64,000 bases of DNA from assembly GCA_038496445.1 (NCBI GenBank), contig JALMLS010000299.1, forward strand, positions 186,001 through 250,000, written 5' to 3'. Positions 2,641 to 64,000 of this stretch are shown one piece after another (the stretch's first letter is position 1; each line of letters begins with the position of its first letter). The position numbers were made by a program, and so were the translations under genes. The notes under the pieces are model-generated. The model had not been told where the DNA came from, did not search any database, and saw only the letters and a program-made list of their open reading frames with translations. Source of the DNA: Trichosphaerium sp. ATCC 40318. Its lineage: Eukaryota; Protista; Tubulinea.

Positions 2641-5568
2641 TTAATTGCGCGTTTCTCTTTGCTTAGCGTCTTCTCTTGTAGATTTACGAGAAGTTTTTGT
2701 ATCCCCAGAGCTACTTGTATAAGTTACAGTTCCAAACAAAAAACAACTTACTTTGTTGGTTTTTCTGGCCGTTTGTCAGAATTTCTTCGGCTCTCTCCGA
2801 GAGATGTAGAACTCAACTCACGTCTATGATACGGTTAGATTGTGAATACATATGTATCGCTTACTTTAGGTGCTTGATCTTGCCAACATATCTGTCCTTT
2901 TGGCGCAAGTATTTGTCCACTTCTTCTTTCTCTTTGCTCAACTTACGTTCAATATCACGTACTCTTCGAATACTCTCTTCAGCTTTCTTCAACTTCATCT
3001 TTGCCTCAGCTTCTTGTTTTTTAAATTCTCGTTGTCGTTGAGTTTGCTCCCTGAAAAATTTATCCTGTAATCCCTCTAATTCTTCTTCCCATGCCTGTAA
3101 CTCTGCGCCCTTTTGATAACAAAGTTAGTAATTTCAAAAAAAAAAGGAACTTCTCGTTTATCCCAATGGAATTTCTTTAGATGTACCTTTTTCGCTATTT
3201 CATCTCCGTCGCCATTAGTGCTACCGTTCGTACTTGGTTTAAGCTTCAGCGATATCCTACTATTCGCCCTTGTTAATCGGCTACAAAATAAAATTAGAAA
3301 AGGGCAAACAATCACGTTATTTCTGTACCGTTTCAACTCTTTCTCACGTGCTCTTGCGCTGGCTTCTTTTTCTCTCATTTGTTCTTCTTGACGCTCCAGT
3401 CTATCTTCCAACTTTTTTATACGCTTTTGGTACAATGAGATATCCAAAGAGTTCGGGTATTCTAATACAAAGAAAGGAAAAATCAGATGCGAAAACAAAT
3501 AGAAAAGGGTCAAACCTTGCTCCCTGTTTTTTGCTGCTTTTGAAAGGTTTTTGTCTATTTCCCTGCGCCTTGTGGAGTGTCATTATCACATAAACACTAG
3601 GAGCGTACCTTCTGGCTAGATCCTCCTCTTTACGCTTTAGTAATTTTGCTGTTATTTCTTGCTTTTTTTGTTGAAATTCTAGTAGGTTACGAATAGATTG
3701 TAAGTCTCGTGACTCATTTGCGATTGCAATATGCAAAGCAGGTGATTTTACAACAACACCTATAGACTTCCATTAGCAATAAAAAAAACTGTTAGAGAGC
3801 AGTATACCATCCTTTTTGGTCATTTGAGATAGTGACACTTTCTCAAGTGGTGGAACATCTGTTGGTTCGGTGCTTTTAAGGGCTTGAGCTTCCTACAATC
3901 CATATTTAGAGAACATCACGCATGACTGGATTCCTGTACCTCCAGTTGCTTTTCTAATTCCGCCACTTTGCCCTGTAGTTTTTCTTCGCGCTCTTTAACC
4001 TAAACTAGGTAAATGCTTTCACGTTGCTAATAATTAAGTGTACCTCACGTGCTTTGGATAATGCAGCAGCCTCTCTCTTTTTTACAGCTGCTAATTCTTC
4101 ATCAAGTTCTTTCTCCCTTATTTTAATAGCTTTCTCGCGATCTGCTATTTGCTGACGCTGGTCTGATAGCGTGCTTAGGACGTGTTGTTTCTCGACCTGG
4201 TTTTGAAGTTGTTCTAAGGCCATGCTCTTTTTCAATAAGCTTTGCTCTTTAATTCCCAGATCGCTCTCCCTCTTTAATAAAGCTTCTTTTTTCTTTGTAA
4301 TCTGTCTTATATTAGTAATTACATCTGGGTAAATATGTTGTACCTCAGACGAACGGACATCAATAGCAGCTTCTCTTTGTTCCACACGCTTACTTATTTC
4401 CATTAACTTTTTTTCAAAAGTTGTCATGATCTCTTTGCTCGTTTCGTGCTCCTGATACAAATTAAATATGTCATAACATTCACATACAACACGTGATTAA
4501 CAACAAGAAAAAAAGAAGTGCACCTTTTGTCTTGAAGTTACAAGAGCATCCTTTTCTCTTAGTTTGTACTCCATTTCCTTTACTTTCTTCTCTCTACTGG
4601 CGAGCTTTCTTTTTGCTTCTTGCAACTCTACACTCTGTCTCTCCAATTCTCGTTGCTTGGCACGCACTTGAATCTCTTTTTTATGAAAGTTAGTTTTCTT
4701 TGTTTCAAATTCCTGTCTGGATTCATCAAACTCCATTAGCAGTTTTTCAAGTTGACTATCAGCGGGTCTAGGTGCTCTTCTTGTTGCCTTTTCTTTTACT
4801 GGAGGAGGTTTGTAAGTTGATTCACGAAGGTGCTTGAAGTGTTGACCGAAGCGGTGACTATCTATTAACAACCTCTTGTGCGACTCCTTGATTTTTTTAC
4901 AGTGTTAACAAATGTACAGTTTTCGATAAAACAGAAAAAAGCATACGAGTATGTGCCACTTCATATCTGTTTTGGCTTTTTCTGTAGTAACTGGATCGGT
5001 GTCAGCTTTTTGAGAGCCTCCATTCATGTTGGTCGAGGAAGCGTTACCTTAAATAGTTACAACGCAGATAGTACTCTAGTTAAAAAACAAAAATTACGCA
5101 CTAGAAGCTGCGTCATTAGTTGGTTTCAATCCTTTTCGTCTAGAAGAAGATCGCCTTGTTGGGCCCTAGTTATGTACATTAACTATCTTTGTAAAATTCC
5201 AATGGCTACCCGTTTACCTCTGTTGCTTGGGATCTACTCCTCCTCTTTTTCTTCTTCTCAGCACTTATCGTAAATTCGGTACCTAATCAGCTTAAGGTCA
5301 CGTGACATATAGTTTTAATGATATAAAGCAATAAAAATGTATCGTCGTACCCTCTGTAGAGAATGGGTCACTTTGAGCCAACACTTCAATTTTTGCAGCC
5401 TTCTTGCCCCTACCATTAGACTTCTTCTTGCGATCGCTATCGCGTCTTTTTTTGCGCTCAATCTAAAATTGCTTTTTTACAAATTTCGTTTTGTACCAAA
5501 CGACACCCTTTTATTTTAATAGGTACCTTCATGTAGTCATCGCTGCTGCTCGATTTGAACATTGACAT
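2641..5568 (-). CDS. Long K/E/R-rich coiled-coil protein of unknown function (about 17 introns)
   Basis: MSMFKSSSSDDYMK first exon; many exons of heptad-like E/K/R sequence (ORFs 4005-4460 and 4497-4871); TAA at 2641-2643. Confidence 0.7.
5297..5306. promoter_or_regulatory. Perfect palindromic E-box GTCACGTGAC (CLEAR-like) in an intron near the divergent promoter
   Basis: The sequence is seen directly; function is inferred only. Confidence 0.25.
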
Positions 5569-5750
5569 GCAAGTTTTTTTTGTTGTTGTTTAATTTATTT
5601 ACTTTGCACCTGGCTTGCGAGATACAGACGGTGTAGTTACCGCGTCGATGTGTTTGTAGTTGCGACAAAGGATGGATTCAAACGAGATGCAAACTGCACC
5701 TTAAATGTTTTTCAATTTATTTCTAAAATCGCACTTAACGTACTATCGGT

Positions 5751-7292
5751 ATGGCGCAGTTGTACTGGCTACCTAGGTCTATTGCGCGGTACCAACGCAA
5801 AATACCAGAATGTACAGAGATCATTGACGTAAGAACACCACGTACGCTTAATTTTGGCGCATTTAATGCGAAAAAGCGAATAATCTACGCTGTACATACT
5901 CACAGCAGTCCAACTTACCCAACGTAGTGGAATACGCTGAAGACCACATCCCTGGCGTACGCAACGTAATGTAGTGCAATTCTGACTGTCAGTGAAGGCT
6001 GTAAACTTACCAGTACTTACAAACGAACAACGAGTTACAAGTGAGCGTGGAGATACTTACGCAGCTACTAACGCACACTGTAGTTGGAACGCTACATAAA
6101 GCAACTAAATACAAAGCTCGCTTAGGTACTAGCACTAAATAGACTGTATTTCCTTTAACTGCAAGAAGATGGCGCAGCGATGATATCCAGAAACATTGCA
6201 GATCACATAGACACCTACTTTAGCACAAAGCCGCCAAACTATTCTCCACTCTTCTACTGGTAATAGTTAAACACCACAAATCACTTACTAATATCGTACT
6301 TGAAAGTTGGAGAGGTGGAAATAGGTCTTACAGTATAGCTCTTAGTACGATCATTTGACACATGTCAAAATGTCATTTTTGGAATTCACTTCAGTTTGTA
6401 ATTTAACAAAAACATAGCTCTGGGTCGTATCGGTTTCAAGACGCATATGTGCGTTCAATAAATCTCTGTCGTTGTTTTTTTTAATATTGTATCATAGATT
6501 AGAGGGAGGTTATAAAGATTACAGAGCAACAGTGCGCGAAGAACTGAAAACTGAACCAGAAAAATACAAGTTTTTAGTTCTTAGAGGCGCAGCTGGCTCA
6601 GGGAAAACAAAAATTCTCCGAGAAATGGCGCAAAGGTACATTAGGTATACCGAGACATTACTTAGTACTTTACAGGACAGATTTTCAGGTACTTGATTTA
6701 GAAGGAATTGCCAAGCACAAAGGCTCTGTCTTGGGTTGTTTGGAAGTAATTAATGAGAAACAACCGTCTCAAAAGAGTTTTGAAGGACAACTACTTGATA
6801 AGTTAATGTCATTCGATCCAGAAAAGCCAATTTGGGTAGAAGGAGAAAGCACTAAAGTTGGTGATTTGGTTATACCAAAACAATTGTATGCACAAATTTC
6901 TTCTTCTCCCAATGTACGCTTTGAACTTGGTAAACCTGCAAGAGTAGATTTTTTAATAGAAGACTATAACTATATGCTTGAATATCCTGACGTCCTGAAA
7001 GAAAAATTAAGCTGTCTTGAGGCAAATTGCGGTAAGAAAAAAATAGGAAAATGGCTTGAAATGGTACGGCAAAATTAAGAACACATTAATACTAATGCCA
7101 TCAAAGGTTGATAACAAAGAGTTTGGAGATCTCGTTTTGAATTTATTAGAGTACTATGATCCAAGATATTCATTTTTTGCGGACAAGCATGATACAAACT
7201 ATGTCGCAAGTTTACAAAGAGAAAACCTAAATGACATAAATGATGTTATAGAAGAACTTTCTAAAGTTCAGAATAAAAGTGTACCCACTTGA
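5751..7292 (+). CDS. selU: tRNA 2-selenouridine / geranyl-2-thiouridine synthase (SelU/MnmH/YbbB), 8 introns
   Basis: Spliced: IIDVRTPLEYAEDHIPGAVNLPVL (rhodanese) ... LFYCWRGGNRS (active-site Cys) ... LEGGYKDYR ... GAAGSGKT (P-loop) ... QVLDLEGIAKHKGS ... QPSQKSFE ... IWVEGES ... YYDPRY. All introns are GT-AG. Confidence 0.93.
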
Positions 7293-7315
7293 ACCAAAGT
7301 ATTTGTTACCTTTTT

Positions 7316-8661
7316 TTAAGTCTTTCGCGTATTTACTATCCATTGCGAAATCTCAGTCCGAATCTAAACCAAATAAACAACAGCATGAATAGAGCCAACA
7401 CATACAATCTTTGTAGCGGAATCAAATAGTCTTTCCCATTCTTCTCCAGTACCAACAACACCGTGCATTGTGCGCAGGTAAATGTTTTTAACATGTGTTG
7501 TCTCTAGAAGCTTGTATTTTGAGCCAGTTTTTTTAAACTCCTAATAATATCATTCATTACCTTGTAGCCTGTATTGGCTTGTACCTCTACAATGTATGCT
7601 ATCAAATTACGCTTGGTTATAGGAAGCAAGTCAGAGTACTTTTGCTTTGCTGAGGGTAAATGTGGATAAATCCAAAAGTTCACAGCTATGCAAGGTTCTG
7701 TGCATTTAATAAAGTGCCACCAATACCTAAAAAATTTAAGCAACGAAAATATGTCAATATTGGTACATTGGAATAAGCAACACTTCACTAGTATTAATGA
7801 CACCATGCCATACATTTGTACTGTTAATCGTTGGATTCTTGTTACCAGATAGTGGGTTTGTAGACGCAGCATTGCTGGAGTTATCTCTCCTATAGTGCTA
7901 TTGAGTACTATAGCATAGAAAGTTTTGTACAGAGGTATCTTGTCAATATTTTCAATCGGAGAATAGCTATTCATTGTCAAGAACATTGTGCTGTAATTAA
8001 TTGTAAAAATATAAGGATACAGCCACACTTCCTTTTGACCTGATACTATACACAACATTCCGGGGTGGGCTAGACTTTGTCACACAAAATAGCATCGGAA
8101 TGCTTACCATCATAGTGAAGGTGAGAGAAGTGTTCAGCCATGCCGATCCAAATCCTTCCACTCTCACTTTTTGCCATTAGCTATGTTACATGTTGCTCAA
8201 TTGTACCCATTGTTTAACCCCTCACGTTTAGCTTGAAGTTGTCAATACTGGATAGATAATGTACTGAAGTACTTGGCATATGATAGTCATCTAGTAACTT
8301 TGCACTGAGTTGATCAATGCACTTATTGCCAACAAATACATCATTCTTTGCAGGTGTAGTTTTTGCTTGTTCCCAGATGTCAATGAAGTCTGCGAAGGGT
8401 ATTGCTGATGGCTTGTATGGAAAAGAACCTTGTGATGGTTGCAAGAATGCCTACAGTATTAACCGTTGTGTTTAACTACTCAAATACCTCAACCAGTGTA
8501 CTATTATCAACAGTCTGCTTTAAATAATCAGCAGTCCACTTATGTAATGCCTGCCACCCAGTTATTGCGCTAGTGATAATAATAGGTTTATTTATCGCTT
8601 CAAAGTCGTCTGGTAGACTTTGCCACTCTACTCTTTCAATTGAAGTAGTTGTTACATCCAT
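7316..8661 (-). CDS. JmjC (cupin_8; JMJD5/JMJD7/TYW5/HIF1AN-like) 2-oxoglutarate-Fe oxygenase
   Basis: INKPIIITSAITGWQALHKWTADYL; HFSHLHYDAH (HxD); GQKEVWLYSP; LLIPMYWWHFI; IAVNFW. The 3' end is inferred. Confidence 0.85.
7967..8020 (-). other. U12-type GT-AG intron
   Basis: Donor GTATCCTTA; TTCTTGAC 9 nt before the end. Removal gives KEVWLYSP. It is 54 nt and stop-free, so support comes from motif and homology. Confidence 0.75.
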
Positions 8662-19041: not shown

Positions 19042-21461
19042 TCAAAAAGTAGCTTGGGTGAGAATACGTTGTACACGCACTGAGTTAAACTTAGTTGCAA
19101 GTTCATTCAGTTGGCTAAAGTTTCTTCGTGTAATTCTTGTTGACAGATACTTTTCGAGCTTATCAATAAATGCGGACTTGCTCTTAGAAATACCAGTATT
19201 GTCGCAATCGATAATAAATGCAGTAGCCTTGTAAGCATCTAAAGAGCCCTAATATAGTTTAGAAGATTGCCACAAAGAAAAACTGAACGCACATCTGATA
19301 AGCTTGACTCTATACAGCTGATACAAACTTGCCTGCAAGAAGAAATTAAAAAAAAACTGTTCGTAATAATCTCCGCGTACAGTAGTTCTGGTTGGTTGTT
19401 AACATGTGAGAAACGCATCACGTCCATAGCGTATTCAGTGTCTATAGATTTATAATTAAAGTAGAGATAGCGAAGCACAGCTTCGAATGCTTCATAGCTC
19501 ATAGTCCCGTAAGAAGCTGGTAGCTTCATAATTTGATCTAATCCATCAGCTCCTTTAAGTTGTTAATGACGTTAGTCCTACAAGAATATTTTACGTACTA
19601 GTCTGGATTTGTTTCAAGTTTTTATCTTCAAATAGTCCAGCCAATTGCTTATTGCGACACCATATGTACTTGTGGAAGTTTACGTCTATGACGTCAAAAC
19701 TAATGGTAATATCTGCTCCTGTACGTAACTCGTACAATTTCTGGTGAATGGCTTAGTGCACCGCGCATAGTCTGGAAGTGAGACGAACCTGAAAATCTGC
19801 GGCCATTGTGTCTTTGATAGTAATAGTTTTCTTGGCGATTGGTTTGTATTGTGCTTGATTTGTATTAACCTCAAGCACCACCTACAAAAGAGATTACAAA
19901 GAAACCTAACTCTTAATTGCAGTACCGCCTGAAATGTTTCAAACCCAAGAATTTTACTACCATCTTTGTTACCAAGGAAAGCAACAAAATTGCTGTAAAT
20001 AGCATCCATACAAATGCTCTCGATATCTTTTTCTTTCAATTGCATTGCAAACTTGAGAACGCTATTGAATATAAGCTACAATTACAGGGTCGTACGACAA
20101 AAAATAGGACGTACGCATGGACATTGCCTGCGTCAATTGTAGTTTGAAGGTGTACTTCAATAATCTGTACCAAGCGTTGTATGTCATACATTTTGGCAGT
20201 ATGTGCTAGTAGTACCAGAGACTCTGGTCGCCATTTATCAAAAGCAATACCCCCCGTGTATATATATTCTAGTACACCAAGCATAGCAGAATACTGCACC
20301 TTACTAGTTAAGAATAACTGCTTCAAATTACGCTTCTTCTTTTCTTTTGATTTTGTTTTTTGTATCTCTTTCTCAAATACAGCAGGACATCTAGCACGGA
20401 GCAAAGCTTCGTGGGCGTGTACTTCCTTTCCTTTACTAAAAACAAAATCCACATCGTTGTAGGTTTCATCGTTGAGAAGGTGTTGAAACGTAACTAGTAC
20501 AAAGATCAGCTTCAACAGTTTTCTGTGGGATATACATACCAGCACATGCTGCAAGATTACGCTCGCGCTTTACTCCTGCATCTAGCTTCGTCGCCTTTTT
20601 ACGAGACGATCGCATTAGACCTGCACGCCTTCCGCTACAATATTTTTACGCTTGAAACCTAACTGGAAGTTGACATACCTTGAAACCTGGCTAGAACCTT
20701 CATTATCACTACATATATTAGTACATTTCCTCCTTTTAGCCAAATAACATTTACGTACGCTTTGCTCCTGTAGGCACCAGCAAGACCTTGTAAAACAGTT
20801 CCCTTTGGATAGCGTGGTGGAGGTGCTACGCAACGTTAGTCCCTTTTTAAAAAGCATAGATGTCTTACGTTTAACAGGCCCAGTGAAACTTGGCTGACGC
20901 TGTACTTCTTGCGTCGGCCTAGGAGAGCCAAGAGCACTGAAGGACATTTGGCTAGAACACGTCAGAAAATGCATTCATTCAATTTGTAGTACACATACTT
21001 CAAACCAATAGCATCAGCTAGTTGTTTACCTTCCTCTCTAGTGTAGAACCCAATACCTACTTTGGCCGTTGCACCTTGTAGAAATGAGCGAAAACGGCTC
21101 TGAAATTCACCTAGCGAACCTTTTGGTCTAATTAAAAAGTAGCGTTTGCTGTCAATTGCCCTCTGGGGCATAGATTCGCTTATGGAAACCTCTGCATGTA
21201 CTTCGTCTGTTTGTAGTAAGTACCTAGTTAAACATAGCGAAACGAACCAGTTAGGCGATCTAATAGTTGAATACACTTGTCTCCTGACTTATCAACTACT
21301 GTGCAAATACCTGGCGCGTTTCAGCTTCGAGAACTCCGAAATAGCAGCGTACCGGCCCAAGCGTATTTAGATGTATTCCATTCAAGCGCACGAATGGCTG
21401 AGTCCGTTTGAGGGACGTTAGAGTACATGAAGCACTTAGGTATCTTCAAGAGTTGAGTCAT
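19042..21461 (-). CDS. NECAP-type PHear domain fused to tandem BTB/POZ domains
   Basis: N-terminus: LKIPKCFMY...IRALEWNTSKYAWAGICTVV...CIQLLDRLTDEVHAE...DSKRYFLIR...VGIGFYTREE. BTB1: YNDVDFVF..VHAHEALLRARCP..LEYIYTG. BTB2: FHKYIWCRNKQLAGLF..FEAVLRYLY. Confidence 0.75.
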
Positions 21462-32007: not shown

Positions 32008-33532
32008 ATGGCAGCTTTGGGCATTGGAAATCCTCTATTAGATATCAGCGTAAACGCACCTGATTCATTGTTCGCAAAGTAAGGCTTTGGAGTGTTAAAA
32101 AAAGTTTTTTTGTCTTATTCTGCTTAGATACAAATTGGAGACCGGTAAGGCTATTCTCGCTGAGCCAGAGCACCTTCCATTGTGCGTAATATAACTTCAA
32201 CGCCAAAGCTAACAAAAAGTAAGGTACCCTGAAATTCAGGCTAACAAAGATGCTGAATACACTGCCGGTGGTGCTTGTCAGGTACGTAGAGGAAGAGTTT
32301 TCCTGACGACTTCTCACTTCATCGCTTCCGCACGAACACGCTAATAATATTGTAGAACACTATGAGAATTATCTCTTGGATGCTACCAGGTGGTAAATCC
32401 TCAAACTACATTGGTTGCGTCGGTAAAGACGACAACGGAAAGCTCTTGGGGTATCTACGCTACAGAAAGTTTTTCATTGACGCGTTTTTAGCACCGTATG
32501 TAAAAAAGCCGGTGTAAACGTCCACTACTTGGAAGATGAAAAAACAGCAACTGGAACATGCGCTGTTCTCATCAAGGACAAAGAACGGTAACCGGAGAAA
32601 TAGAAAAAAATCAATCTTAATTCTTTTTAGTGCCCTAATCACAAACCTTGGTGCCGCCAACTGCTACACCACAGAACACTTTGACACACCAGCAATTCAA
32701 GAAGTTGTCAAGTCCTCAAAGTTCTTCTACGCAACCAGCTTTTTCTTGACTGTCTCTCCAGAGACACTTGTCAAAATTGGCAAACACGCTGCCAGCAACA
32801 ACCAAGTACGCTTTTTTCAAAGATATCCAAAAATTGTGATAGCACTATTGTCCGTGCATGCCGACTGACCACATTTCTTAATAGCTATTTATGCTCAACA
32901 TTTCTGCTGAATTTTTGGTTCAATTCTTCTGGGATCAAATGCACCAAGTATTGCCATACGTCGATATTCTTTTCGGTAACGAACACGAAGCCGCTGAATA
33001 CGCCAAGAAAAAGGGATGGGATGTACGTGGAACCCTACTAAGTTATGAACATACTGACGTATTTTATTAGGCCACCGACTTGAAGACTGTAGCTAAGAAA
33101 CTCGCTGAAGAGGGTCCAAAAGTAAACGACAAGAGAAAGAGAATTGTTGTATTTACTCAAGTACGTTACATGAACTTCTTGTGCAATACAAAAAAAAATA
33201 ACACTCTTTCTTAGGGCGCTGACCCAACCCTTGTCTACAAAGATGGTAAAATCACTGAGTACCCTGTTCTTCCATGTCCTCGTGAGGAAATTGTTGACTT
33301 GAACGGTGCTGGTGATACCTTCGTTGGAGGATTCATCGCTGGGTACGTTGAAATGCTGCTTTTTTTTTGTCGCTTTAATTCTTCCATAATGCTAACAATC
33401 ATTCCCTTTAGTTTGTTGTCTGAAAAGCCTCTTGAAGAGTGCGTAAAGGCCGGCCAATTCTGTGCTTGGAATTGCATCCGTAGCTCTGGTGTAACTGTAC
33501 CAGAAACTTGCACCTACAAATGGTCAAACTAA
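32008..33532 (+). CDS. ADK: Adenosine kinase
   Basis: GIGNPLLDIS; AGGACQNT; TGTCAVLI; LITNLGAAN; DILFGNEHEA; VDLNGAGDTFVGGF. Confidence 0.95.
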
Positions 33533-33664: not shown

Positions 33665-35237
33665 TCATTTCCTGCCCTTTAGCATCTGGAAAACAGCACG
33701 ATTACTCAAATTGGTTGTTAAGAATTTAATAAATTCTAGTACAGCCACATCAGCCTTTTTTCTTTTGTTGGTGTATACCAATACCAGCGATATTCTTTGC
33801 TCTGCATTGCAAATGTAGTACGTGGCTGGCATTTTGTTGTCGTAAAAATATATGGGTATATGTGGCTTCCTTCGGTTAGAACCCTGATTGTCTTGTATGA
33901 GACTGACAACGTTCGGCATGTGCTCCATCGATAGTCGCTCTGGAATAGCAAAAACAGTAGGATATGATTTTAAACCAGTTAATGGTTCGTCTGGCATGGA
34001 CACTGGACAAACATATGGTGATTGTGGATTAACGTGGGTGCCTTGTGTATCGTAAACAATGCTTTGAGAGAAAAAAAGTTAGCTAGATACAATTAACATT
34101 AGCACGTACCTAAAGTTAAAGCATGCAGTGCGGCTTACAAACTGAGCGCATAATTGCGCATAATTCAGCCACAATTTGGATCGCATCGATGCCAGAGGGG
34201 ATTTTGGAAAGAAAGTATCTTGTCGCTTTTACAAGGATTATATTAGTACATTGTAGTTTATTTTGTACAAAATGAATACAATAACGTTTGACTTGACGTA
34301 CTGTTTTGAAGAAGTCATGAAAGTAAAATGTAAGTTTTGCTGTGATGGCACTGAATAAACGATCCAGCCATGCGTGAAGTGCAGTTCTCGGTATTTTTAC
34401 TTCCCTCTATTATTGTGGAGTGAGGGAAACTGGGGCTATTAGAGTTTTTTAGTACCTGACTTGGAGATGTCGAAAAATCAGCTAGAGCTGATTTTGCGCT
34501 CAACATATGGCAAACACATTCCTTCAAGTTGTACCTCGCCAAAGCTGACTGACAGGCGAGTAGATGACGCAAGGCAGTTAACTCAGAACTAATTGCGTTT
34601 AACAGTTGGGTATTACTTTTTGACAATTAGTTGTACCTGAATGTTACTGCTACATTTGTTACTGTTGCGTGCTTGATATCACGTGTTAGTGCCACGTGAA
34701 TCGTGTCTATACGAGCAACAATAGAAATTAAGTCTTGAGGCTTGTCAGAACTCAATGTACGATATATTTCTAAGGATTGTAATCTAGTTGATACGATGCT
34801 TATAATATCCTGAATGAGAAGGGAGTATTGACTTTGTGGTTTGTCTGGTGCTTGTAAAAATTGAGGGTATATTTTGCTGAGCTGGGTGAGTATAAGGTTG
34901 TACATGTATACGAGATCCTACAAGTGTCAATGTCAAAAAATAGTGTTCTATGCGCCTAAGGAAAACTCGTGGTAATACCTTTTTGCGAATCCATTTGTAT
35001 TCAAGATAAGAAAGGTTGTAGTACATCATTTCGCATTGAGCTAATTGTACTAATGAAGGAGCTAATAACCACGGCGATTTAGCGTTTTGAGCAGTCTACA
35101 AATATTAAACGTCAACTAAACTTTGGCTTCGTCGCTACCTGGTATGGTTTGAGGACGTCAGCTGCTTTACTACAGCTTAGGCGCTCTAATTCTGCAAAGA
35201 AGATCTCTACAGCGTCGCTGAATCTTAGTTTATCCAT
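33665..35237 (-). CDS. KICS2: KICSTOR subunit 2 (C12orf66) homologue
   Basis: LAQCEMMYYNLSYL; ELTALRHLL; PLTGLKSYPTVFAIP..EHMPNVVSLI; FYDNKMPATYY. Confidence 0.75.
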
Positions 35238-55459: not shown

Positions 55460-58400
55460 TTATTTTGAGTCTTTCTTTTCTTTCACATCTGTCATTGTAG
55501 CATCTTCCTCATCGGAACTTTCAACAAGTAGCGCCACCAGGGGTTTTGAAGCTAAAAATAAAAGTCACAATCTAATGCCATTAAAGCGCAGTACGTTTTT
55601 CAACAGGTGTTTGAGGTTTTATAGGTTGTCGTGGCTTGGGGTATTGAGTGTACCTACGTAAAGGTTAACAAAATATTATTTGTAGTGCGTACTGCACTGA
55701 AGGGTACATCTGAGGAGTATATCCAGCCATGTTTATTGTCTGAGGTTGAGTAAAAGGCATAGGTGCTCCGACGTGCTGATTGATAGTCTGCAATAGTTGC
55801 TTTTTTTTATTACACTCTTGTTGAAGCCGTTGTAGGTTACTTGTCAAAGCTTGCATAGAAATAGGTGCTCTATAATATTGGCGCGGTGCCACCATACCTG
55901 GATTACCTCGCGCTGCGAAATATTGGCCTGGATTGTACCCGTATGTTGGCGCAGGAGGTATCATAGATGGCATTGGCATATTGGGGAGTCGTGGCTGGGA
56001 GTCCTTATTGCCAAAGTATAAGTCTACAATAAAGAGTTATGCTATTTAGTTTGATGTAGTAACACTCACTGTGCATGCGATGCGCCAACGCAGTTGCCTG
56101 ATTAGGTTTTTGATCACCGTCAGGTGTATTGAGACCAAATCTGTCAATCTTGAGAGGTTTTGCAGCTTGTGGCCGCGTTTTCTTAGGGAGAACATTCTTA
56201 GACTTTAACATATAATTTGAAGGGATAATTTTAGCTTTCTTTCTCAGTGGTGCAACCTTTATAGTTTCGATGTCCATTTCAATTCTAGGACACGGGTTAA
56301 GTACAAGTCGTTTAAATAAGCTTACATGTAATCATCAGGTTGATCCTCTTCGTCATCATGTATGTACTCTTCTTCATCTTCGTCACCCTCAGCAAACCCT
56401 CTCTCTCGGTAGTTTACAGCTTTTCGTTTGCGTTTCCCTATACAACCGTAAGCATGGACTTCACATTTCGGAAGTAATAAAAAAAACACTGAAATAAACC
56501 AGCAATTACCACGCCCTCGCTCGTCTTCAACTTTTTTGTGTCTTGACTGTATACGATGCTTCAATAGTTTATCCCAATACTCTTCAACCTTTTGTTCAGC
56601 TTTTTTAGAGCCTTTGAGCATCGTATCATTGTCCCACAACTTGGCCACCGTAAAGTTACCAACCAGATCTCCTAAAGCGTCCTTTTCCTCTAAAACTTTG
56701 GCCTCTTTCTTTTCTTTTTGGTCTCTGTCCAACAGTTGATCAATTTGTGCTTCATCCTATGTTTACCAATAAGCCGTTTTTCTTGGCAAAACAATCTAGT
56801 AAGTCGTACATAGTTGTATTCATCGTCATCTGTCTCTGCAAACAAATGAGCTGTTCCGTAGCTTATCAGTTTATTAATTTCTCCTTGATTGAGAGCCTTT
56901 CCCATCTTTTTGACAACAATTTCCTCAAGCACCAACTTGTTCTTGGCACGATCGATGATTGCTTCCTCAACAGAATTGCGGCATACAAATTGATAGATCA
57001 TTACTTTGTTTCGTTGCCCAATGCGATGGGCTCTGCTTAAAGCCTGAATATCATTGTGGGGGTTGAAATCAGAGTCATACAAAATGACAGTATCTGATAA
57101 CAGAAGTTAGTATGCTATTTGATTGATGGTGAGTGCACCTGCTGACGCTAGATTTAATCCAACACCACCTGCTCTAAATAAATTGTGAGATCACGACTAT
57201 CACAAGCATCAACGTACTTGGTACTAAGCAAAAAAATAAAGTACTTGTCAGTCTGAGTATTAAATTTTTCAATTTCTCGCTCTCGATCTTGGCCTGTTAC
57301 TGCACCATCTAATCTACAATAATGCCATCCATAATGCTTGATAGTATTTTTTAGTTCTTTAGTCACTACAATTGAAAACATACGTTAAGATAATCCTCTA
57401 AAATATCAAGAAGCTTCGTCATGTGTGAGAATAATAGAACTCTGTGCCCTTGCTTATCTAGCTTCCGCAACATTTTGTCCAAAATAAATAATTTACCACA
57501 CGATTCAACCATCATTCTAAAGTTGCTTGTAAGAATTTTGTAGCTCGAGTTAGTTTTTTTGTTAGTACTTCATTTCTTTGTCCTCATCCTCGATATCCGG
57601 TTCGACGTTGGGGATGAGATATGGATGATTGCATAGCTTCTGTAGTTGCGCTAAGATGTTCGTCATGCGCACCTTTGTCCCGTGTACCTATTACATAATA
57701 AGCGGAATTGAGGGCTTTGTGGAAAATTGTACCCTTGCTAAATACTCATAGTTTCGTTCTATAATGTTCTTGTACAAATCTTTTTGAAACTTGGTTAACG
57801 AAATTGGAACAATCAATGACACCTAAATGGAATTTAATAAATAAGAGTTTTAGGATAGCTTTTTTTTTACCTTAGCAGGGATCAGTTGTGCAACGACATC
57901 CTTCTTGAGCCTTCTGAGCATATGTGGGCTTAAAAGTTCGTGCAATTGTTTGACCTTTGAAGGAAATGAGCTACAAGAGTTCATTGAGTAGAACTTTACC
58001 TGATCTTTTTGATGCAAGTCTGAAAATCGCTCAAGAAGTTTATCGGGTTTGTGACTCTGATCAATAAAATACAACATATTAAACAACTCAGTAAGATTGT
58101 TTTGAAGAGGAGTTCCTGTGAGCAATACTCTGTGCTTTGTTCGCCAGGTAATCAACCGCTTAAATAGTTTAGAACGATCACTCTTGAGCCTGTGTCCTTC
58201 GTCTACTATGAGAGCCTATTTTTTATATTACATAAGAAACTCGTGATGCAATAACAAAGTTCGTACCTCCCAATTGAACTTCTTTAATATAATGGAATCG
58301 CGAAGAGCAATCTCATAAGACGTTAATAGCACTTCAAATTTACATTGCTTGTCCTTTGAGAAAAACTCCTTCTGCCTTATCAATTGTCGTGATTCATGAC

Positions 58401-60268
58401 CGCCCTTATAACACACCACATTCAGCTTGGGCGCCCACTTTGCAAATTCATTGTCCCAGTTAGTAATAGTAGACAAAGGCGCAATCACAATAAATGGTTC
58501 GCGTGTACTCTCCTGCATTCTCAAGGACACGATAAACGCTATAGACTGTATTGTTTTACCGAGACCCATCTCATCTTAAAGAGAACAAATGAGTATTTGC
58601 ATCAATTTGTAGAAACAAAAAAAAAGTGTACCTGCTAAAATACCGTTGGTCCCCTTATGCCACGAATAGCGTAACCAATTAACACCATCCAATTGAAATT
58701 TGTACAAATTTAGGCCATTGTCAAAATATTTGGGTGTTTCAGTCCATTCTTCGAAGTTACCTAAACACATATGTTTGTAAAGTGCAATTTAATAAATGTA
58801 GGAATTACTGGCATCTTTCTTTGGTTCTTTCATTGTTTTCTTCACTTCTTGCCACACTTCGAACCGCTCAACACGCTCTTTGTATGCCTATAGTTGATGC
58901 AATTGATATCAGTGCTGAATACAATGGAAAAGCTACCTTCAATTGTACAGGAAACCTCCGTTTGATAACCTTTGAATCTTCCCATGTACTATCCAAAAAT
59001 TCTAACCCACACCAACTTACAAAGTATTGCTTTAAAGTCTTAGCAACACGTCTTGCAATTAGTTAGCTCACTAAAAAGATATACGAGAGCGTATACCTTT
59101 CTGCCACTACACGGTGCACTCTTTCATTCTGTGCACGCTTCATGTCTAGGTTCTTATCTGGACCTTTGCGTTTAAAATTTTTCCATTTTATGTGCGCCAA
59201 TCTCTTCACGTGACGTTCTTTAACCCACTCATTGTGTATGTGAGAAAAACCCTTCCATTTGATACAATATTCTCGGTGGTTCTATAGTACCGCGGTCACT
59301 AAAAATCCATGTCCTATCGTACGTACATCCTCGTCAAGTCTACTTTCTAGTATTACATCTATCTGTTTGTCATCGTGCTCAAATTCTTCGTCACTATCGC
59401 TCTCACTCTCGCTTTTTCTCTCCTAACCACATTTTTGGATAAATACATACCATAAGTGAGCTACCTGGTTATCTTCTCGTTTTTTTCGTATCCTGCAATA
59501 AGAAGAATTAATTAACGAGCTTTAATTTTTAAATAGTGGCTCTCTGACAAATAAAACTAACGCACGATGCTTGCTTCTTCTCAAAAGCAGCTATGGCGCC
59601 ATCATCAATGTTCTCAGCAGGCTCCCACGTGTTGTGATCGCTACCATAGCCTTCCCACGAGATCAAGTAATGAGCGTTGCCCTGAGGTTCCTTTAACGCG
59701 GTGCCAGAATCAAAGGAAATAGAGCGGTTGAGACTTACACTAATTACTCGCTTGCTGAGTATCTCCTTGACAACATAGCGGTCCTCTTCGGATTCGTCCA
59801 TATCCATGTCTTGCATCTCGGCAAGAAGCTCATTTTGGCGTTTATTTAACCACTTTATTGCTATCCTACGCGCACGTGAGCGAATTCGTTAAAGTTGATT
59901 TTTAAATGAAATTATGGGGTTATTTTTTCTTTGTACAGCGCTGCTTTTTTCAAGCTGGTGTTTCTTCCAGCTTTACTCAGCTTTTTGAGTCTTCGTTGCG
60001 TTTGATTTTGTATTTGGTGCTCTTCTATCCACTGACTGCGTAATATATTAGTATCGCTTCAACGATGGTCTCATCTTACACATCACCCTTGCCAAAGAAA
60101 AACAGGGCGTGGTGTTGCGGTTCTGCGTTGGAATTTGCGTATTTTGTGCATTCTTGCTCACTGGCAGCCTATTTACGTAAACGAGGGTATAAATAATGCA
60201 CTACAAACCCTAGCAGGCCACATTGACCCATCGCTGCGTTTTGCTAGCACCACTTTATTGCTAAACAT
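55460..60268 (-). CDS. CHD-family SNF2 chromatin remodeller with PWWP-like N-terminus and three chromodomains
   Basis: [14 protein letters not shown]; DEGHRLK; LTGTPLQNN; [22 protein letters not shown]; RKRKAVNY; chromodomains at about 59580-59780, 59180-59370 and 58960-59130. Confidence 0.9.
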
Positions 60269-61637: not shown

Positions 61638-61744
61638 AGTTGTTGTTTGTTTTGCGTTGTTCAGAAAAAAAAAACTCAAGGCATTTGCACAGCTTAAGCC
61701 ACTTTTCATTGTCTTGTACATTGTATTCAGTTGTTTTTCCACCC

Positions 61745-64000
61745 ATGAGCAGGACCTACCTGCGATGGAAGCTGACAGAAACCTTTGGCGTGGTTACATC
61801 AAACCCTTGTAACGTAGTTTTCGACAATGATGGGAAAGGGGCTATCACAGGCGCTTTAGAAGCCATTCTAGTATGGCATGTCAGAAAAGGCGTAATTATG
61901 CGGCATTACGTTGACATTGAAGAAAGAACAAAGGCGTCGCCCGTTGTACGCGTTTTGGTGACTCCAGATAGTAGATTATTGATAGCTGGGTATGTAGGCC
62001 CACTCCTTTGATATGAGAGCTCTCAGGGCCTAATTTATGCATAATTTTTGTTGTTACGCCCACCATTGCATGTTTTGGTGTTTTTCTCAATAAAAACAAA
62101 ATGTACTAACTGCCTGAGTAGCTACCAAGACGGCACTATACGCGTATGGGATAATAAAGAGCGAACTCTGCTCACGGTATTCCGTGGACACACTTCCACC
62201 ATTACATCACTTGTATTACATCCTGATGGCACAATACTGGCTTCTGGTAAATACAAACAGCAAAGTTTTTTTTTTTTCTCTCAACTAAACAATAAAAAAG
62301 GGTCGACTGACACAGACATAATTCTTTGGGATATTGTTGCTTTGGAAGGTCTCTTTAGGTATGTTTTAATTCATGTCAAGTTATAAAAATAACGTCACTG
62401 TAGGCTTCGCGGACACACTAATGCCATAACACATTTGAAATTTATACAAAATGGCTCTACACTCGTGTCAAGTTCCAAAGATGGCTATATCAAAGTGTGG
62501 GATTTTGAATCGCGCCATTGTGTACAAACAGTCATAAGCGACGAGGGAGAAGTGCGTAGCTATTTATTTGAAGTTGTACTCAATTGTTTTGGTAGTTTCA
62601 TGGATTTGACATTGACGATGCGGAATCGAGGTTAATAGCCCTCACGGGAAAACGCAAAGCGTTAGTGTATTACTTGGTTGAACCAGAAGTATGTTACTGG
62701 AATATTGTACTCCAGCTGTTTCACTAACACATTTCAAAGGAAGCGAAAAAGTATGAACTGGAAGAGCGCAAAGCAAACGGTATTGATGACGAAGACATTG
62801 ACGAAGAGCTACAAGTGGACACTTCTGTGTTTACACAAAAACGCATTGTGTACTGGGGCGAGTTTCCACGCAAGAGCAAGACAAACGTGCGTAAAAAGAC
62901 AACTGTTGCTTAACTGTGCATATTCAAAATCCATAAAGGTTGTATCTGTACAATATAATCCAGAAAACTCAATGGTCGCTCTACAAACCACATCGCAATT
63001 ATTGGAACTATACACAGTCAACGACGAAGAAACAATAAAGAAGAAAATGGCTAAACGAAAAAGACGTGCAAACAAGAAACAAAAAGAGCGTGCCAAGGCA
63101 GGAGACGCTGATGCAGGTATGCTATCAAGCCGGTTTAATTATCTCATCACCCATTAATACATAAAACAGAACAAGTCAATGAAGTGGTTAAGACTCCAGA
63201 TATTGAATTTCAAGCTCTGGGACTTCTCCAGGCATCTGGAAAACTATTGAGCTTTGCGTTTTCTCCAACACGTGGCTCAGGAGAGGTACAAATTTTGTTC
63301 ATTGTTTTCAAAAAAAACCAAAAGGTCTTACAGCAACTGTAAATAGATACTGTTGGCTTTAGCAGACAATCGTATGGAATTTTATCGCCCAGCTAGTGAC
63401 GGGCAAGGCTACAATAGCGTTGCCACTATTGAACAACCTGGACATCGCTCAGATATTCGTGCAGTTGCTATCAGCCCAGCAGATACCGCAATAATGACAC
63501 TCGGCCAAGGTATTGTTCACAAATTTTTAGCTACCTGTGGCGAAATTAAGCTTAATTTAGATGGTTTGAAGATATGGCGAGCTGGTACTTTGTTTTGCAT
63601 TCGCTCAATGAAAACACAAGGCTATGCAACATGTGGCTACTTTGTTGGAGGAGATCGCTACGTTAGTTGGTAAACGTGCTTATTGATGGCTAAGTTTATA
63701 TTTAGGTAATCATTGGCACACGTGAAGGAACACTTGAAATCTATGACTTGGAGATAGCGCGCAATGTAGAAAATATCAAGGCTCATGACGGCGAAATATG
63801 GGATATACATGAACGTCCTGATGGGTACGGCTTACCAAATATGAAATACATTTAGAAATAATTCTTTGTTGACAGAAAAGGATTTGTCACGGCGAGTGCT
63901 GACAATACAGTTGGCTTTTGGGACTTAGATGCTGTACCAGACAAAGAAAGGGGTGGTAGAAAACTAAGGTATTATAAACAAAGCAACTGCTTGTGGTGTG
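61745..64000 (+). CDS. WDR3: WD40 SSU-processome protein UTP12/DIP2/WDR3 (partial, runs off the right edge)
   Basis: MSRTYLRW..TFGVV; GALEAILVW; GYQDGTIRVW; FRGH; PGHRSDIRAV. Confidence 0.92.

Follow-up and report, generated by a model that had tools for sequence, protein, structure and literature searches.

The window analyzed here is a 64,000-nucleotide stretch of a contig from the protist Trichosphaerium sp. ATCC 40318, and the gene under study, selU/mnmH, lies at positions 5751-7292 on its forward strand. We built the gene model by reading positions 5400-7700 and linking open segments through GT-AG introns. The resulting model runs from an ATG at 5751 to a stop codon at 7290-7292 and comprises 10 exons separated by nine GT-AG introns, one more than the eight counted in an initial annotation made from the sequence alone (Table 1). 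The coding sequence of 1080 nt is translated into 359 amino acids, and a single open frame is obtained only when all nine introns are removed. Because the intron lengths (40-86 nt) are never a multiple of 3, every one of them must be spliced out to hold the frame. The short leader given in the initial annotation, MAQLYWLPRSIARYQRK, was recovered as described, and an in-frame stop codon at 5736-5738 precedes the ATG, with no acceptor AG between the two. An additional upstream exon carrying a longer presequence was considered and is unlikely, given this stop codon, the missing AG, and the mere 182 bp to the start codon of the divergent neighbor, whose RNA extends into that interval.

Table 1. 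Features of the SelU locus and other genes identified in the window
Feature	Position	Strand	Remarks
Divergent upstream gene, intron	5463..5526	-	64 nt; spliced in X1 RNA
Divergent upstream gene, first coding exon	5527..5568	-	ATG 5568; loose end of the X1 contig joins 5527 to 5462
Intergenic, SelU ATG to divergent neighbor ATG	5569..5750	.	182 bp; neighbor RNA reaches at least 5662
SelU exon 1	5751..5841	+	Start codon, basic N-terminus, rhodanese start IIDVRTP; gene model
SelU intron 1	5842..5927	+	86 nt
SelU exon 2	5928..5956	+	29 nt; gene model; homologue alignment gap-free over junction
SelU intron 2	5957..5997	+	41 nt
SelU exon 3	5998..6040	+	43 nt; gene model; homologue alignment gap-free over junction
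SelU intron 3	6041..6083	+	43 nt
SelU exon 4	6084..6125	+	42 nt; gene model; homologue alignment gap-free over junction
SelU intron 4	6126..6165	+	40 nt
SelU exon 5	6166..6259	+	Ends on bases 1-2 of the catalytic Cys100 codon; base 3 is 6307
SelU intron 5	6260..6306	+	47 nt
SelU exon 6	6307..6344	+	CWRGGNRS rhodanese active-site loop; C100 = E. coli C97
SelU intron 6	6345..6417	+	73 nt
SelU exon 7	6418..6448	+	31 nt; gene model; homologue alignment gap-free over junction
SelU intron 7	6449..6497	+	49 nt
SelU exon 8	6498..6635	+	Rhodanese domain end; Walker A GAAGSGKT at 6586-6609; X1 RNA joins 6635 to 6676
SelU intron 8	6636..6675	+	40 nt
SelU exon 9	6676..7063	+	P-loop domain core (DLEGIAKHKGS, WVEGES); RNA contig coverage
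SelU intron 9	7064..7106	+	43 nt
SelU exon 10	7107..7292	+	EYYDPRY motif, C-terminus, stop codon; X1 RNA contig 7106-7256
Convergent downstream gene, intron	7364..7405	-	42 nt; X4 cDNA joint 7363/7406 (CT..AC)
BTB protein, exons	20039..20554	-
Adenosine kinase (ADK) gene	32008..33532	+	10 exons, 9 introns (41-79 nt), 341 aa; GTACG-type donors
KICSTOR C12orf66-like, exons	33668..34003	-	Tail-to-tail with ADK
SNF2-family ATPase, exons	56693..58569	-
WDR3/UTP12-like WD40 protein, exons	61640..62386	+

Genes are very compactly spaced in the window, and SelU has a neighbor close by on either side. The interval between SelU and the divergent upstream gene would, we infer, hold a shared promoter together with both 5' UTRs. 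The transcript of the convergent downstream gene ends near 7330, which leaves about 38 nt to the stop codon of SelU, and the 3' UTRs of the two genes must therefore overlap. A search with Rfam at gathering thresholds gave no match in the window and ARAGORN found no tRNA genes there; there is therefore no SECIS element or substrate tRNA nearby.

Expression of the gene was evident in RNA contigs, which cover SelU exons 8-10 at a very low depth (2-3x). The spliced transcript presupposed by the initial annotation was found in run X1, in which one contig documents the exact removal of intron 8; this is the one SelU junction of nine confirmed directly in RNA. Contigs from run X2 are unspliced over introns 6 and 8 and are either pre-mRNA or DNA carry-over. 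The contigs of other samples differ from the window at four exonic SelU positions, all of them synonymous third-position changes. In run X4, from another study, a cDNA contig spans 5500-6093 and so places SelU exons 1-4 and the upstream gene on one molecule. This X4 cDNA is on the minus strand, starting at 6093 and reading, without splicing, across SelU exons 4-1, then the intergenic interval, and on into the upstream gene. Its tail at 6093 resembles a SMART template-switch oligonucleotide, and the molecule may be antisense RNA, or it may belong to the divergent neighbor as a long alternative 5' leader.

The introns of SelU resemble those of the ADK gene of the same window. Both genes have nine introns, with a mean length of 51 nt in SelU vs 55 nt in ADK, and both share GTAYG donors (of the unusual GTACG type) and YTRAY branch motifs located 11-21 nt before the AG. 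The GC content of the SelU coding sequence (38.5%) is likewise close to that of the window (39.6%). Among 5.8 billion proteins, the best identity of the ADK protein was 58%, and its nearest named relatives, with 50-56% identity, all belong to the Amoebozoa: Clastostelium, Nematostelium, Echinostelium, Physarum, Amoeba proteus, Copromyxa and Stygamoeba. A quick phylogenetic tree placed the window ADK in a group with an SH-aLRT support of 94, in which every named sequence is amoebozoan. On this single marker gene, the source organism is probably an amoebozoan that has no near relative among sequenced species.

These observations bear on whether the gene could stem from bacterial contamination or chimeric assembly, or be a pseudogene decaying after a recent transfer. 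In favor of such an origin, the window protein resembles its nearest bacterial homologues (47-49% identity) just as closely as its nearest eukaryotic ones, the gene is weakly expressed, and the contigs include unspliced ones. However, SelU carries nine host-type introns whose removal restores the frame, and spliced eukaryotic genes flank it at distances of 182 bp on the upstream side, where cDNA links the two, and about 38 nt on the downstream side. The frame is intact, the conserved residues are kept, the polymorphism is exclusively synonymous, and the GC content is host-like. The contaminant, chimera or pseudogene explanation is thus effectively refuted, and the claim of the initial annotation that eukaryotic flanks set this gene apart from contamination stands, backed by host-type introns, spliced neighbors on both sides and the splicing of intron 8 in RNA. 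SelU in this window is a native, nuclear, expressed, intron-split gene.

The encoded protein was assigned to the SelU family by three NCBIfam equivalog models. It matched the MnmH equivalog NF008752 with 384.3 bits (cut-off 266), TIGR03167 with 307.2 bits (cut-off 219.75) and NF008750 with 302.7 bits (cut-off 241). These matches span residues 17-352, with the alignment beginning at residue 17 and profile position 14, and the Pfam Rhodanese model was matched at residues 22-133. In the Pfam search the window protein gave no match to PF26341 (AAA_SelU), which homologues carry in their precomputed annotation. In the PDB there is no full-length SelU structure, the sole match being to a rhodanese domain that stands on its own (3g5j).

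Conservation was examined in an alignment of 240 homologues and E. coli SelU (annotated K-12 record), in which columns at least 95% conserved were scored. The window SelU retains 63 of the 64 columns that are near-invariant among these 241 homologues. The sole departure is an Ala in the Walker A motif, where 99% of homologues have Thr, and the motif (GAAGSGKT, residues 153-160) still fits G-x4-GKT. The catalytic Cys, C100, lies in the C-x-x-G-x-R loop (CWRGGNRS) of the N-terminal rhodanese domain, and the MnmH-specific rhodanese insertion (~33-36 aa) is aligned without gaps. The description of a complete rhodanese and P-loop SelU with both motifs intact was therefore accurate, the equivalog scores being above their cut-offs and both motifs being present. 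The window gene is an ordinary member of the well-known SelU/MnmH/YbbB family and does not point to a new mechanism.

The best-characterized point of comparison is SelU (MnmH, YbbB) of E. coli and Salmonella (NP_415036, locus L007 6133-7227), which has the same architecture of rhodanese domain, MnmH insertion and P-loop domain. In the alignment, C100, G71 and K159 (the Walker A Lys) of the window protein correspond to C97, G67 and K155 of E. coli, and the two proteins also have the DLEG..H.GS, E.ES and YYDP motifs in common. Unlike its E. coli counterpart, the window gene is nuclear and interrupted by nine spliceosomal introns, and its activity is putative. The E. coli protein is also very distant (branch of 5-7 substitutions per site), has an acidic rather than a basic N-terminus, and belongs to enterobacterial proteins with insertions near the C-terminus that the window SelU lacks. 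The bipartite SelU of archaea (Methanococcales; TIGR04568, TIGR04569) contains the same two functional modules, but these are encoded by separate genes, whereas the window SelU is one bacterial-type polypeptide; it reached 59 bits with the N-terminal archaeal model (cut-off 200) and 31.5 bits with the C-terminal one (cut-off 180).

A search among 5.8 billion proteins returned a best identity of 49% for the window SelU and no near-identical entry. The best matches came from bacteria, bivalve and gastropod RefSeq proteins, an Echinamoeba exundans transcript in EukProt, and unnamed transcript-sized contigs, and a profile search from SelU relatives added Batillaria, Mactra, Saccostrea and Branchiostoma. 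The animal proteins, named "tRNA 2-selenouridine synthase-like" just by automatic RefSeq annotation, are full-length and carry the motifs of the window SelU, and their nuclear genes contain introns and lie on chromosome-scale scaffolds. They were found in bivalves (Ruditapes, Mercenaria, Dreissena, Mactra, Saccostrea, Sinanodonta and Potamilus), gastropods (Littorina and Batillaria) and a cephalochordate (Branchiostoma), and differ from the window SelU in their longer N-terminal extensions and in forming a clade of their own. Exact protein-to-genome mapping revealed five introns in the Branchiostoma gene (L008), located on a 34-Mb chromosome, and one in that of Ruditapes (L009). No intron position is common to the window SelU (9), Branchiostoma (5) and Ruditapes (1), although two pairs lie three codons apart; the introns therefore lend no support to a shared ancestor that already had introns.

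To place the gene within the family, we constructed a careful tree of 54 rows under LG+C20 PMSF, with the very long branch of E. coli as root and supports given as ultrafast bootstrap/SH-aLRT. The window SelU grouped with Echinamoeba exundans (EP01122_P013779, P0004) at 96/79, and both grouped at 95/82 with a clade of Tara Oceans metatranscriptome sequences (P0024, P0131, P0263, P0264, P0267, P0280, P0281 and P0365). A beta/gamma-proteobacterial clade was sister to this assemblage at 86/75. The animal clade (99/98) branched next, inside a group supported at 96/92, and cyanobacteria fell outside. The branch of the window SelU is long, at 0.8-1.0 substitutions per site. When the 26 rows that are eukaryotic, or putatively so, were all forced together, the likelihood was 16.5 lnL better than in the quick free search, and this grouping was not rejected (p-AU 0.81), while a single eukaryotic clade appeared in just 14% of the bootstrap trees of the careful analysis.

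The Echinamoeba and Tara proteins, the nearest to the window SelU in the tree, share its family motifs and come from poly-A type or eukaryotic transcript data, but are only 42-45% identical to it. Members of the Tara clade are 393-422 aa long and derive from transcripts of ~35% GC. Three of the Tara contigs (L001-L003; ~2 kb, 35% GC) hold a 397-aa SelU ORF followed ~60 nt on by a Nudt16-like NUDIX ORF, an arrangement that looks like a bicistronic message of a marine eukaryote.

These relationships point solidly to a eukaryote-only lineage for the window SelU rather than to a fresh acquisition. The earlier suggestion of a domesticated proteobacterial-like gene needs to be modified in two respects. 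The gene is native and spliced, but it does not stand alone, having both a eukaryote-only clade (95/82) and animal homologues around it. Its proteobacterial affinity is weakly favored by the sister position of the beta/gamma clade, which separates the two eukaryotic groups at 86/75, and a single eukaryotic clade is not rejected.

The mechanism of bacterial SelU has been described previously (PMC7694415, PMC4830565). In E. coli, C97 is absolutely required for selenation, geranylation requires an intact Walker A motif (K155) and is raised by G67E, and ges2U is formed in an mnmE deletion mutant (PMC4830565). By analogy, the window SelU is predicted to bind tRNA-Lys, tRNA-Glu and tRNA-Gln bearing xm5s2U34 and would move the geranyl group of GePP onto the sulfur of the wobble 2-thiouridine (U34). 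The rhodanese Cys C100, with selenophosphate, would then exchange the S-geranyl group for selenium, yielding xm5se2U, and the selenophosphate would probably be supplied by SPS2. We consider it fairly likely that this native, expressed nuclear gene encodes a catalytically competent tRNA 2-selenouridine synthase, a putative s2U to ges2U to se2U enzyme. This reading is preferred because of the equivalog matches, the 63 of 64 conserved columns, the gap-free insertion, the host-type introns, the spliced RNA and the eukaryote-only clade.

To our knowledge, there is no biochemical evidence for any eukaryotic SelU and no eukaryotic activity has been reported. This lack of reports, the long branch and the Thr-to-Ala change in Walker A would all suit a repurposed enzyme that only geranylates s2U, or that transfers sulfur or selenium to another substrate, and forms no Se2U. 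Such a change of function is conceivable in that geranylation and selenation are separable in MnmH, C97 being needed just for selenation and K155 for geranylation (PMC4830565). However, the rhodanese Cys loop, the Walker A Lys and all but one of the near-invariant columns have been retained, and we regard repurposing as improbable.

The N-terminus of the window SelU bears on the compartment in which the enzyme would act. The segment before IIDVR comprises 23 aa, whereas 214 homologues from bacteria have a median of 18. Its composition is unusual in that the first 19 residues include four basic and zero acidic ones; the first acidic residue appears at position 20, and 5% of the bacterial homologues stay free of acidic residues for as long. 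The N-terminal net charge of +2 is reached by 3% of these homologues, and none of the 214 attains the amphipathic moment of the window protein (0.87). Among relatives, basic and acid-poor presequence-type extensions of 34-59 aa occur in Echinamoeba, where the extension is Arg-rich and ~35 aa long, and in nearly all animal homologues (at least 15), whereas those of the Tara clade are strongly acidic.

Because the window SelU has no real N-terminal extension over bacterial SelU, it is unlikely to carry a cleavable presequence. Mitochondrial rhodanese is known to have a short N-terminus that directs it to the matrix and is not cleaved off, and one of this type would fit the window SelU. We favor, at about even odds, a mitochondrial enzyme that would act on cmnm5s2U-type tRNAs, because of the unusually basic and amphipathic N-terminus and the presequence-like extensions in the nearest relative and in animal homologues. 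The hint of mitochondrial targeting in the initial annotation is thus plausible as far as the basic, amphipathic leader and the 34-59-aa extensions of relatives are concerned, and is weakened by the near-bacterial length of the leader. We know of no selenophosphate synthesis in mitochondria.

The alternative is an active SelU in the cytosol, where it would modify mcm5s2U34 of cytosolic tRNA-Lys, tRNA-Glu and tRNA-Gln with SPS2-derived cytosolic selenophosphate. SPS2 is cytosolic in the systems studied, which fits this location, as do the 23-aa leader, hardly longer than the bacterial median, and the acidic extensions of the sister Tara clade, which are not presequence-like. Bacterial SelU can moreover act on s2U that lacks the side chain found at C5 in bacteria (PMC4830565). 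The acid-free first 19 residues with their exceptional amphipathic moment, as well as the basic extensions of Echinamoeba and the animals, speak against the cytosol, and we see a cytosolic enzyme as a possible but less probable outcome than the mitochondrial one.

We found no description of a eukaryotic SelU gene in the open-access literature, nor any sign there that eukaryotic orthologues are already well described, a point on which the initial annotation had been unable to pronounce. The ybbB gene has been used as a marker in prokaryotes only (Mariotti et al. 2015), and papers from 2022 and 2024 treat selenouridine as a prokaryotic trait (PMC9312934, PMC11227280). Old reports mention selenium-containing tRNA in mouse, bovine and plant cells, in which the enzyme was not identified (PMC7216251); mouse, bovine and plant sequences are not among the SelU homologues seen here. 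Eukaryotic SelU homologues are already present in public databases, and what is new is the pointer to a eukaryotic clade that is undescribed in the searched literature.

With its nine introns, host-like composition and putatively shared promoter region, this gene shows cleanly how a tRNA-modification gene of bacterial type can become fully assimilated by a eukaryotic genome. Together, the intact, spliced SelU of this protist and its homologues in molluscs and amphioxus make wobble-uridine selenation or geranylation in eukaryotes, and the compartment in which it takes place, testable by means of named genes. A broader and more tentative interpretation, which we hold to be possible though doubtful, is that SelU represents an old, vertically kept eukaryotic family, present in at least Amoebozoa and animals and lost many times, that would modify mitochondrial wobble uridines to se2U or S-geranyl-2-thiouridine. 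If so, selenouridine would also be a eukaryotic trait of selenium utilization, and the family would offer the first genetic handle on the decades-old, unexplained reports of selenium-containing tRNA in eukaryotes.
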